From Blepharisma stoltei ATCC 30299 (Eukaryota; Protista; Ciliophora): a stretch of DNA of 64,000 nt. Location of the stretch: contig CBFDEM010000017.1 in NCBI GenBank assembly GCA_965603825.1, positions 310,001 through 374,000 of the forward strand. The letters run 5' to 3'. Of the stretch, positions 7,210 through 12,860 are shown one piece after another. Position numbers and translations under genes: made by a program. The notes beneath the pieces were generated by a model. That model saw only the letters and a list, made by a program, of their open reading frames with translations. It was not told the origin of the DNA and searched no databases. Within the stretch, counting starts at the first letter, position 1; each line of letters opens with the position of its first letter.

Positions 7210-7959
7210 ATGGCTGAGTGTGGAATTGTAATAGGAGCGAGCAGAGGAATTGGAAAAGCCTTAACTATAAGACTTGCAACCCAATATCCTGATCTTCCTA
7301 TAATAGCAATTTCAAGTTCTATAGTCTCTTCTCAAACTGCTGTAGAATATTCTCGAACTCACCCTAATATTTCATGCTTCGATGCTGATATGAGCACAAT
7401 GGAAGGAGTTTTATCCGTAGTCAGCCACATTCAGGGCAAAATTAGATTCCTTGTCTATGCTTCAGGTGTCCAAGGGCCATTATGGTCAGAAAATATAACT
7501 GCAGAAGATTTCGACAATGTTATGCATATTAATACTAGAGCAATATTTTTCTTAACGAGAGGACTTGCTGAAAAATTTGCTCAAGGGTCGAAGTTATTAA
7601 TAATAAGTACAGGTCTGGCACATGAATACTTGATCCCTTTCCCTATTTATTCGATTTCAAAAGCTGCGTTATATATGACATATCAAGTATTAAAGCAAGA
7701 AATCAAGACGACTTCAGTAGGTTCTGTTCAACCTGGAGCAGTTAAGACTCAGATGCTTGATAATACTGAAGTTAAACTGCAAACAGAGCTGAAGTTTCCA
7801 AAAATTGAAGCAGATTTATGTGCAAAATTTTTAGCCTATTTGATAAGTGATCGAGTAAACTGCGAAAGATTTTCTCAGGCTGAGTGGAGTATTTATACAC
7901 CAGATCATCATTCTGAATGACTTGAAGAAGGAGATGAGGCACCTTTATGGATTGTTTAA
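7210..7959 (+). CDS. Short-chain dehydrogenase/reductase, copy 1
   Basis: GASRGIG Rossmann motif and YSISK catalytic motif. TGA 7918-7920 aligns with TGG in copies 2 and 3. Stop TAA at 7957-7959. Confidence 0.92.
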
Positions 7960-8251: not shown

Positions 8252-9010
8252 ATGGCTGATTGTGGAGTTATAATAGGAGCAAGCAGAGGAATCGGAAAAG
8301 ACTTAACTCTAAGACTAGCAACCCAATATCCTGATCTTCCTATAATAGCAATTTCAAGTTCGATAGCTTCTTCTCCTGCCGCTGCAGAATTTTCTCAAAC
8401 TCATAGAAATATTTCATGTTTTGATGCCGATATGAGTACAACGGAAGGAGTTTCATCAGTAGCCAGCCATATTCAAGGCAAAATTAGATTCCTTGTCTAC
8501 GCTTCAGCAATTCCAGGTCCAATGTGGTCAGAAAACCCAACACCTGAGGATTTTGATACTGTTATGAATATTAACACGAGATCTGTATTTTTCTTAGCAA
8601 GGGGACTTTCAGATAAATTCGCTGAAGGCTCTAAATTTTTAATAGTCAATGCAGGTTTAGCGCATGTATATCTCATTCCCTTCCCTCTTTATTCAATTTC
8701 AAAAGCAGCGTTGTATATGACTTACCAAGTTTTAAAACAAGAAATCAAAACAACTGCAGTAGGATCTGTCCTTCCTGGGGTAGTAAAAACTCATATTTCT
8801 GATACTGTTTTTGAGAAAATGCAAACTGATTTAAATATAAAAAGACTTCAGCCAGAAATAGTTGCAAAATTTTTAGCCTACTTGATAAGCGATAAGGTAA
8901 GTAGTGAAAGGTTTTCTCATGCTGAATGGGATATTTATAATCAAGATCATCAATTTGAATGGCTTGAAGAAGGGGATGAGCCAGCTGTTATGCCTTCATT
9001 TCATAAATAG
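8252..9010 (+). CDS. Short-chain dehydrogenase/reductase, copy 2
   Basis: Uninterrupted 252 aa ORF with GASRGIG and YSISK. Stop TAG. Confidence 0.93.
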   Translation: MADCGVIIGASRGIGKDLTLRLATQYPDLPIIAISSSIASSPAAAEFSQTHRNISCFDADMSTTEGVSSVASHIQGKIRFLVYASAIPGPMWSENPTPEDFDTVMNINTRSVFFLARGLSDKFAEGSKFLIVNAGLAHVYLIPFPLYSISKAALYMTYQVLKQEIKTTAVGSVLPGVVKTHISDTVFEKMQTDLNIKRLQPEIVAKFLAYLISDKVSSERFSHAEWDIYNQDHQFEWLEEGDEPAVMPSFHK

Positions 9011-9275
9011 TTTATATAAAAGCATTATATTGATGAATAAATATCAACTACTTAAAAAACTAACTTGAAGAATTTTTAATATTATAGTTATAATAAAAAA
9101 ATATTGAGGTCATGCTATAATACGGGGCAATTTTTAAGTAAATTTTGCTCACCCTAAATGCCAATTTTTTTCTACAATTACTATTAAATTATTTATTTGA
9201 ATATTATTATGTAGAATATGTAACTTAAAAGATAATAAAAATTTAGTTGCAGAATCCAGTCGTTTTATAATTAAA

Positions 9276-10337
9276 ATGGCTGAGTGCGGAATTGTAATAG
9301 GAGCGAGTAGAGGAATCGGAAAAGATTTAACTCTAACTGCCCTACAGTTATAAAAGCAAAACTACAATTGTTTCTTTAAATACCAATTATATCTTAGCAT
9401 AAAGAATAAAATTAGTTATGATTATTTTAAATTTTTCTTTCGTTAAATTTAGACTAAATTGTATTGTTCAAATGTTATCTTACTTGCTCAATGAAATGCT
9501 GTTTAAGTTCGAGAATTAAAAGTTTTATTATACGTTTAATTTTGTAAAAGATAAAATATCAATTTTAATTATCAATTCAGCCTTGTACACTTTTAAAATA
9601 AAATTTTGAAAAAAAGCATTATTTTTTTTAAGGGACTAAGACTAGCAACCCAATATCCGAATCTTCCTATAATAGCTGTTTCAAGCTCGATAACTTCTTC
9701 CCAAGCTGTTTCAGAATTCTCTCAATCTCATCCTAACATTTCATGCTTTGATGCCGATATGAGTACAATGTTAGGAGTCACATCATTAATCGACTACATT
9801 CAAGGTAAAATTAGATTCCTTGTCTACGCTTCAGCAATTCCAGGTCCAATGTGGTCAGAAAACCCAGCACCTGAGGATTTTGATACTGTTATGAATATTA
9901 ACACGAGATCTGTATTTTTCTTAGCAAGAGGACTTTCAGATAAATTCGCTGTAGGCTCTAAATTTTTAATAGTAAGTGCAGCTCTAGCTCATAAATACTT
10001 GATTCCTTTCCCACTTTATTCAATTTCAAAAGCAGCGTTATATATGACTTATCAAGTTTTAAAACAAGAAATCAAAACAACTGCAGTAGGTTCTGCTCTC
10101 CCTGGAATAGTAAAAACTCATATTTCTAATACAGTTGAGAGAAAAATGCAAACTGATTTGGGTATCAACAGAATTGAGCCAGAAATTTCTGCCAAATTTT
10201 TGGCTTATTTGATAAGTGATAGAGTGAGCTGTGAAAGATTTTCTCAAGCGGAGTGGAATATTTATACACAAGATCATCAATCTGAATGGCTTGAGGAAGG
10301 AGATGAGATGCCAATCCCACCTGCTTTTCGTCCTTAA
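9276..10337 (+). CDS. Short-chain dehydrogenase/reductase, copy 3, interrupted by a 303 bp insertion after codon 20
   Basis: MAECGIVIGASRGIGKDLTL at 9276-9335, then RLATQYP... from 9639. Removing 303 bp gives 759 nt, the same length as copy 2. Confidence 0.85.
9334..9638. mobile_element. TA-bounded 303 bp AT-rich insertion (candidate IES or MITE)
   Basis: Absent from paralogs 1 and 2. CTAA direct repeat at 9333-9336 and 9636-9639. No GT..AG ends. Weak C-rich/G-rich imperfect inverted termini. Confidence 0.7.
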
Positions 10338-10438: not shown

Positions 10439-11062
10439 TTACCCTGGAAGCTGAATTAATTCGATATCTCCTGTATCCTCATCCACCTTCCACATTAAAT
10501 TCAGCTTAATCATTTTAATATTTTTTTTCTGCAAGATTTCTTTCGTTTTTTCTACCCTAATTGCAAACAAATCATCATCAAACTCAGTCATTTCTCTGCT
10601 TCATTTGCATTTCCCATTTAACAAAATAATAGTCGCTTGTATAACTAAAGCAACTACCATAAAAGGAATTCCAATATAGCTAAGCACATTATCATCAGCC
10701 CAATAAGAGTCAATAATCAAAAATAAAAAGAAAATCCCCATTAAGCAAATTGAAAGAACCAAAAAATTCCTTGTTTTGGCGTCAGGCTTTAAGCTCTCAA
10801 TTTTCGCATTATTTGCGGATTCCAGCTCATGTCTTAGAGTAATCCCGATTTTATTTATTGATTTCAAAATTTTTAGAGATGGGACATTTGATGATTGAAC
10901 TAGAATTTCGAAGGATTCTTTGGAATCATGATGCAATTGGAAACTGTTGAATTTATCTAGCACGAAAATAATTTTTTCTTCAGGATCTATATGTGGAGAA
11001 GTGTATAAAGTTGCTGTTTCTCGGCCTTGAGTATCTAATCGATTGCCATCGCTACTTGACAT
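10439..11062 (-). CDS. Hypothetical two-TM membrane protein, copy 1 (207 aa)
   Basis: Two hydrophobic segments. TGA=W at 10601-10603, then open to TAA at 10439-10441. Confidence 0.75.
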
Positions 11063-11214
11063 ATTTTACAATTAAGTTATTTATTTAAGATTATAACAAT
11101 TACTTTTGAATTTGTAGATGGTAATGCAAAACATATCAAATGCTGAGAAGTCAAATTTAATTGAAGGAAACGCAGAACTGGTATATAAGTAAGCTAGATA
11201 TTATAATGCAGATG

Positions 11215-11340
11215 TTTTAGTAAAGTTTTAAGCATATTTGATAAGTGAGAGTGTGGGTTGAGAGAGATTTTTTCAAGATGAGTTGGTGTTTAAACACTAA
11301 ACCATCATTTTAAGTTGTGAAGAAGATGAGCCAACGTTAT
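11215..11340 (+). pseudogene. Eroded 3' fragment of an SDR gene
   Basis: gcatatttgataagtgagagtgtg...gaagaagatgagcca resembles the SDR AYLISD...EEGDEP coding region, with indels. Confidence 0.6.
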
Positions 11341-11805
11341 AAATTGTTTAATAACCTTCTGAAAATTCTTATCAATAAATAATAATTTATTTTATAATAA
11401 TCTTAAAGGCTCAAGCAAAGATAACTTTTTTTCTTTTAATTAAAAAATTTCTTTATATATTAATAATGCTTTATTTGATCTAATACAAATAATGCAGGTC
11501 ATGCATTAATTCGGTGCAATTTTCGAGTAAATTTTGATCACTTTAAATACCAATTTTTTTCTACAACTGCTATTAAATCATTTATTTGAATATTATTATG
11601 TGGAATAGCTATAGGAAGATATCAGTATTTGGAAAAATAATCCACGCGTGGAACAAAATTTCAAACGTCAAGCAATTCAAGTCAGGAGACTACAAAGTTG
11701 GGTTTTAAATTCAATATGTGGCTGCCCTTCCATGTTGATGCAATTATTATAAACTCAAAAGATAGTAAAAATTTAATTACGGAATCAAATAATTTTATAA
11801 TAAAA

Positions 11806-12126
11806 ATGGTGAGTGCGGAATTAATAGGAGCGAGTAGAGGAATTGGAAAAGATTTAACACTAGCTTGCCTATAGTTAATATAAACAAGCCTACAATTGTT
11901 TCTTTAAATATCATTCTGTCTTAACATAAAGAATAAAATTAGTTATGATTATGTCAAAAGAATTGAGCCAGAAATTTCTGCCAAATTTTTGGCTTACTTG
12001 ATAAGTGATAGAGTGAGCTGTGAAAGATTTTCTCAAGCGGAGTGGAATATTTATACACCAGATCATCAATCTGAATTGCTTGAGGAAGGAGATGAGGCAC
12101 CAATCCCACCTGCTTTTCGTTCTTAA
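11806..12126 (+). pseudogene. SDR pseudogene (copy of copy 3) with insertion remnant and ~740 bp internal deletion
   Basis: The 5' end has 1 nt and 2 nt deletions. It keeps ~90 bp of the 303 bp insertion, then jumps to the RIEPEISAKF C-terminus. Confidence 0.85.
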
Positions 12127-12239: not shown

Positions 12240-12860
12240 TTACCCTAGAAGCTGAATTAATTCGATATTTCCTGTATCCTCTACCTTCCACATTAAATTC
12301 AGCTTCATCATTTTAATATTTTTTTTCTACAAGATTTCTTTCGTTTTTTCTACCCTTATTGCAAACAAATCATCATCAAACCAAGTCATTTCTCTGATTC
12401 ATTTGCATTTCCCATTTAACAAAATAATAGTCGCTTGTATAACTAAAGCAACTACCATAAAAGGAATTCCAATATTGCTAAGAACATTATCATCAGCCCA
12501 ATAAGAGTCAATAATCAAAAATAAAAAGAAAATCCCCATTAAGCAAATTGAAAGAACCAAAAAATTCCTTGCTTTGGCGTCAGGCTTTAAGCTTTCAATT
12601 TTCGCATTATTATTGAATTCCAGCTCATGTCTTAGAGTAATCCCTATTTTATTAATTGATTTTAAAATTTTCAGGGATGGGACATTTGATGATTGAGCTA
12701 GGAATTCGAAGGATCCTTTGGAATCATGATGCAAATTGAAACTGTTGAATTTATCTAGCACGAAAATAATTTTTCCTTCAGGGTCTATATGTGGAGAAGT
12801 GTATAAAGTTGCTGTTTCTCGGCCTTGAGTATCTAATCGATTACCGTCACTACTTGACAT
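12240..12860 (-). pseudogene. Two-TM membrane protein copy 2 with premature TAG (truncated gene or pseudogene)
   Basis: Near-identical to 10439..11062, but CAG>TAG at 12327-12329 and a 3 nt deletion downstream. The ancestral TAA is retained at 12240-12242. Confidence 0.7.

Follow-up and report, generated by a model that had tools for sequence, protein, structure and literature searches.

A TA-bounded insert in an SDR gene of Blepharisma stoltei that is probably an IES removed in a second strain and no longer excised in ATCC 30299

How does a gene that is otherwise intact come to carry, in the somatic genome of Blepharisma stoltei ATCC 30299, a stretch of 303 bp whose removal restores its reading frame exactly? 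The gene is the third copy in a small array of SDR genes within the window analysed here, a stretch of 64,000 nucleotides (contig CBFDEM010000017.1, positions 310,001 to 374,000). An earlier inspection of the letters alone, referred to below as the sequence-only reading, had proposed that the interrupting DNA (insert B) is an IES or MITE that must be excised. The features concerned are these:

7210-7959, forward strand: SDR copy 1, 249 aa, intact when TGA is read as Trp
8252-9010, forward strand: SDR copy 2, 252 aa, intact; somatic DNA without the insert
9276-9335, forward strand: SDR copy 3, codons 1-20, including the GxxxGxG dinucleotide-binding motif
9334-9638, no strand (both TAs included, 305 bp): insert B, a 303-bp TA-bounded AT-rich insert
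9639-10337, forward strand: SDR copy 3, codons 21-252, adh_short, with the catalytic YxxxK
10439-11062, reverse strand: unnamed gene whose product is 207 aa when TGA is read as Trp; duplicated along with copies 3 and 4
11806-12126, forward strand: SDR copy 4, dead; decayed and carrying an insert remnant
11861-11955, no strand: what is left of insert B in copy 4, located at the same codon; 86% identical and without the right end
12327-12860, reverse strand: second copy of the unnamed gene, with a premature stop

Copies 1-3 are arranged in tandem, the third occupying 9276-10337 in all. They were classed as classical SDRs on the presence of the GxxxGxG and YxxxK motifs together with a score above the cut-off of 26.6 bits for the Pfam family adh_short (PF00106), copy 2 scoring 75.4 bits and copy 3 48.6 bits; for copy 3 this search used the 3' piece, and the joined copy was used for translation and dN/dS. 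A structure search with the SDR matched distant classical SDR structures only. In a related ciliate the syntenic place (L014 6774-7529) holds an SDR that is 65% identical and is followed by the same EF-hand/phosphodiesterase region as in the window. As that SDR is single and uninterrupted, both the array and the insert are taken to be younger than the split from this ciliate. Copies 2 and 3 are 98% identical over CDS 241-360, which marks a conversion tract. Other SDR-related sequence was seen at 11200-11340, a strongly decayed relic of a fifth SDR 3' end (about 70% identical), and at L009 (G000:C33:594585-595322), where a distant SDR paralogue shows in-frame stops and match gaps and may contain a tiny intron or be a pseudogene. 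The unnamed gene duplicated with the array (10439-11062 and 12327-12860) has no Pfam family and shows two hydrophobic stretches.

Insert B has a GC content of 21% and is flanked by a 4-bp direct repeat, CTAA, which contains the TA (9333-9336 and 9636-9639). Because the repeat stands at both junctions the ends are ambiguous in register, and any 303-bp removal from 9333-9635 to 9337-9639 gives the identical 759-nt ORF of 252 aa. One copy of the TA-containing terminal repeat then remains and the paralogue sequence is restored, as for a TA-bound IES of the PiggyMac type. The sequence-only reading had thus described the insert correctly in its length, TA boundary, CTAA junctions and restored ORF of copy 2 length, and in its AT-richness, internal stop and want of GT-AG ends. 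Its 'loosely inverted ends' are within chance: the end inversion scored 9 against a mean of 7.6 for random TA..TA segments of 250-350 bp from the window (P = 0.23), and no end-to-end inverted arm pair was found for the insert. An intron was rejected, there being no GT..AG in any ORF-restoring register; introns of the genus are 15-16 nt long in the passages used of PMC9942806. If insert B is kept, an in-frame stop follows six codons into it, and the first in-frame ATG, at 9759, opens a frame of 192 aa without the N-terminal GxxxGxG motif. The protein collection entry for copy 3 is this 192-aa form; a copy 3 protein of the second strain, introduced below, was not found in the collection searched. 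A start codon within the insert was rejected because no in-frame ATG precedes 9759, and so was rescue by a TTG-started ORF at 9606, from which the N-terminal motif is missing.

Contrary to what had been supposed, copy 3 does not alone carry the insert, since copy 4 has its left ~95 bp. One duplication gave rise to copies 3 and 4 and also doubled the adjacent gene. Copy 4 has since suffered two frameshifting deletions within its first 60 nt and an internal deletion that runs from within the insert remnant to about codon 197. In the 5' non-coding DNA, insert included, copies 3 and 4 are 14.6% different (d = 0.16), compared with a strain divergence of about 5% (56/1049). The two inserts differ at 14/94 positions and their flanks at 25/174, and this like divergence argues against a recent transfer of the insert from copy 4. 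By sequence comparison, therefore, the entry of insert B into the SDR gene is placed before the tandem duplication that produced copies 3 and 4.

It is then of importance whether copy 3 functioned while it carried the insert. Between copies 2 and 3 dN/dS is 0.27. When copy 1 and the L014 gene serve as outgroups, the copy 3 branch receives 15 synonymous and 16 non-synonymous changes (pN/pS 0.32; P = 0.002 against neutrality), a further 13 synonymous and 18 non-synonymous changes being unplaced. A copy 3 that had been dead since the duplication would be predicted to have gathered about 45 non-synonymous changes, 2.1 stops and 3.8 frameshifts, and the probability of its being intact is 0.003; if only the period preceding the strain split is counted this becomes 0.022, and for a copy dead only since that split it is about 0.13. 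These estimates are rough, as they draw on 268 aligned non-coding sites, and the conversion tract shared with copy 2 may erase damage, which weakens the argument from selection. Judged from these substitution patterns, copy 3 was under purifying selection after the duplication, with the insert already present, and because it was selected while carrying the insert, insert B would have been excised through much of its history. The proposal that the insert must be excised accordingly stands for the past (0.003 and 0.022) and not for ATCC 30299 today (about 0.13), where no joined contig was seen.

The state of insert B in DNA was followed in Logan contigs, which show presence rather than absence and from which rare forms are dropped; run identities are those suggested by coded labels. 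In X5, a run of the same strain without differences, a single contig of 804 nt (9033-9836) spans insert B at a depth of 148, against 145 +/- 12 for single-copy contigs; excision in half of the molecules would give about 114. Since these same-strain reads carry the insert at full depth, insert B is not an assembly error, and capture of germline DNA by the assembly, which the sequence-only reading had allowed, is contradicted by an independent short-read data set. Insert B is the majority somatic form in ATCC 30299, with room for a minority of excised molecules, and a joined copy 3 was not seen among the DNA or RNA contigs of this strain. A heterozygous indel is unlikely because the strain is nearly homozygous and the depth is full. 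The insert is found alike in somatic DNA (X5) and in a germline-type run (X6) of ATCC 30299. A loose contig end at 9614 in X5 and X6 was considered as a sign of a nested element and rejected, being a chance A/T-run match to contig C18.

A different state was found in a second strain. In run X12 a contig at depth 150 joins 9332 to 9636, skipping 303, and no X12 contigs lie on insert B; the joint contig by itself accounts for the bin depths, and its length has room for about 0 letters at the joint. X12 is taken for strain HT-IV (PMC9942806) because it is about 5% different, its alleles recur in the mixed RNA run and it was produced in the same study. It presents a precise empty site at full depth, although as total DNA of the presumed HT-IV a clean site could equal germline loss. 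To judge by its depth at 11804-11999, X12 appears to carry the copy 4 remnant as well. The empty site in the second strain, together with purifying selection on copy 3 after the insertion, lends support to the earlier suggestion of an IES retained in the somatic genome.

Coverage in run X8 falls on genes rather than on spacers, and the run is for this reason treated as RNA. Over copy 3 its coverage extends from 9635 onward and is mostly of the same-strain allele (126 against 16 of the other at 10111-10237). There are no X8 contigs on insert B and no joint across it was reported; RNA joining 9335 to 9639, which the sequence-only reading had put forward as a check, was not seen among these contigs. 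The first X8 record of copy 3 begins one base inside insert B, with no mismatch, and this one base hints faintly that the copy 3 transcripts are of the unexcised form, possibly initiated near the insert end. Copies 1 and 2 likewise lack their 5' ends in the X8 contigs.

The germline-type run X6 revealed further variable DNA beside and within insert B. This run is of the same strain, holds 82 million letters against 44-55 in the others and has many loose ends; going by the passages used of PMC9942856, it probably represents one of that study's four micronucleus-enrichment fractions. The additional features are:

9221-9222, no strand: TA site of element A, an element of about 142 bp missing in the assembly and found in X6 and X12
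11610-11751, no strand: copy 4 paralogue of element A, lying upstream of that gene and retained in the ATCC 30299 soma; TAT-AG lost at its right end
9370-9382, no strand: site C, a 13-bp stretch ending in TA that stands on either side of extra DNA, in X6 only

Element A lies 110 bp upstream of insert B and is 87% like 11621-11732. Read inward, its right end is TATAGAAAATT, which matches the published TAT-AG signature, and the left end of the copy 4 paralogue, TATAGGAAG, fits the same signature; the ends of insert B, unlike those of element A, do not fit the published weak IES end signatures. One X6 contig holds element A and the left part of insert B together. In X12, element A is present in the main DNA form at copy 3. 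Within insert B two X6 contigs depart from the reference on either side of 9370-9382, and the extra DNA at site C is a probable nested IES that is absent from the soma; the X6 contig that covers copy 4 has no such nested DNA. ATCC 30299 therefore removes A and apparently C and keeps B, and the second strain keeps A and is without B. In X6, one contig skips 60 TA-bounded bases at 8989-9048, possibly by cryptic excision, and this skip would alter the final codons and stop of SDR copy 2. At 9031-9034, inside these 60 bases, same-strain contigs break in the manner of a variant site, and in X12 2 letters are replaced by 35 others.

The pattern is probably best explained if insert B is a true IES, removed in the second strain but no longer in ATCC 30299. 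An old IES would have inserted at a TA of the SDR gene before copies 3 and 4 were duplicated and would have been precisely cut out whenever a somatic nucleus formed, keeping copy 3 functional. The second strain, in whose germline insert B is presumed still to reside, would retain a clean somatic gene. ATCC 30299 would have stopped excising B while still excising its neighbour A and apparently the nested DNA, and its copy 3 would be broken, with at best the 192-aa product that lacks the cofactor-binding motif, a loss that copies 1 and 2 would cover.

An alternative holds that insert B was formerly an IES and is now a presence/absence difference of the germline, precisely lost in the second strain, non-excisable in ATCC 30299 and excised nowhere. 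It would explain all of the observations equally well, the second strain being known from total DNA, and the lack of published signatures at the ends of insert B would agree with it. It calls for two events, a precise germline loss and a loss of excision, within a strain divergence of about 5%, and element A shows that somatic presence at this locus does vary by strain for an element that lies in the germline-type DNA of ATCC 30299; we consider this alternative unlikely. Somewhat less likely still is that insert B was never an IES but came into copy 3 as an inactivating insertion from a dead paralogue, by recent gene conversion or unequal crossover. Conversion and decay are both evident in the array and copy 4 is itself a dead copy bearing the insert, but the first 60 nt of copy 3 are free of the two frameshifts of copy 4, and another donor, now missing, would be needed.

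In Paramecium, control of mating type at mtA and mtB uses co-opted excision. The sequence-only reading had likewise raised the possibility of a heritable on/off switch, by which strains or mating types would keep A (in the promoter region) or B (in the coding region). As with mtA and mtB, whether the element is excised could decide, heritably, if a gene is on or off, and A and B are opposite in two strains of complementary mating type. Insert B differs from those cases in having no phenotype or sign of regulation and in having redundant paralogues adjacent. Moreover, the comparison comprises two strains only, from Germany and Japan, one of them cultured for over fifty years; the broken allele dominates copy 3 RNA (126 against 16, in one mixed sample); and a literature search found no paper tying the SDR to mating. 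A connection with gamone 2 synthesis or with mating type was rejected on the last two of these grounds, and a switch of this kind is very improbable; as an adaptation it finds no support here. Least credible of all is that insert B belongs to an active or recent MITE family or is germline DNA captured by the assembly: TAA at both junctions recalls the Bogo target duplication, its size is in the MITE range and germline-limited copies would be invisible in a somatic assembly, but there is a single duplicated copy, no significant TIR, no Bogo end and full depth in the same strain.

The 'undescribed MITE family' of the sequence-only reading thus comes down to one further copy made by tandem duplication: a search of the somatic assembly (41.46 Mb, 64 contigs), in which germline-limited DNA is invisible, gave one match to insert B, the copy 4 remnant, and a BogoMITE identity was likewise rejected. 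The Bogo TIR core, as given in the passages used of PMC9942856, had no match anywhere in the window with 3 mismatches allowed. BogoMITE is described there as 389 bp long with a C-rich 30-bp TIR and a TAA target duplication. Insert B resembles it in its TAA junctions and its size of a few hundred bp, and is unlike it in having no C-rich 30-bp TIR, a length of 303 bp and no dispersed copies in the somatic assembly. Elsewhere in the somatic assembly there are nine degenerate matches to the Bogo end motif (1-2 mismatches; none for the reversed control), on contigs C5, C11, C14, C18, C30, C35, C53 and C60, which are possible somatic Bogo relics.

Insert B as a retained IES may be set against systems already described. 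The IESs of B. stoltei have a mean length of 331 bp, a GC content of 33% and a somatic retention of <=0.02, and nesting occurs (PMC9942856, passages used). Insert B is like the non-periodic TA-bound IESs of this organism in its TA within a direct repeat, intragenic position, near-mean length, precise empty site and nesting, but is unlike them in being the majority somatic form, in its GC content of 21% and in its off-signature ends. The cryptic IESs of Blepharisma, of which the portion used of the PMC9942856 SI gives 10,048 sites with a median retention of 95%, are likewise TA-bounded somatic DNA missing from some molecules. Cryptic excision, however, removes functional sequence by error, whereas removal of B restores an ORF and the paralogues identify it as an insertion. 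In Paramecium the unexcised state arises either by end mutation, as in AIM-2, AIM-5 and sm19-1, or by maternal inheritance with wild-type sequence, as for the maternally controlled IES 51G4404 (PMC2425466). Insert B is like these IES+ variants and end mutants in that one intragenic IES persists although those around it are removed, and differs in being a natural strain difference, in a heterotrich, with both TAs intact. In the passages searched, the two Blepharisma genome papers describe true IESs as being removed efficiently and contain no discussion of IESs kept in one strain and removed in another (PMC9942856; PMC9942806).

If insert B is an IES whose excision has ceased in ATCC 30299, the cause may be a change in B itself, either an end mutation or the nested insertion, or a maternal inheritance of the unexcised state based on small RNAs and aided by the somatic remnant in copy 4. 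The two are close to evenly balanced, with a slight leaning towards a change in cis. Both TAs are preserved in insert B, but at its left end the third base is not the same in copies 3 and 4; because copy 4 differs in both respects, either this base change or the nested DNA could be the cis cause. On the maternal side, Blepharisma possesses 24-nt scanRNA-like RNAs. Whether relics of A and B at copy 4 could shield their paralogues is uncertain, given an identity of 86% and the removal of A despite its relic. A more far-reaching form of this explanation, that A and B are both wild-type IESs and that the parental macronucleus passes on their opposite somatic states, is possible but doubtful.

The enzyme biology itself is minor, two intact copies adjoining copy 3. 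What is new here is an element A with a strain pattern opposite to that of B, and germline-type DNA nested in B, so that the locus combines two elements separated by 110 bp, each with the reverse of the other's strain pattern, and a probable nested third. The case illustrates that failed excision can kill a redundant paralogue. Were the opposite states of A and B inherited maternally, this would be the first maternally controlled IES retention in a heterotrich, would place scanRNA-type inheritance near the ciliate root and would make maternal retention readable in crosses between two standard laboratory strains. The locus could in this way help to separate cis from maternal control of excision in an early-branching ciliate.
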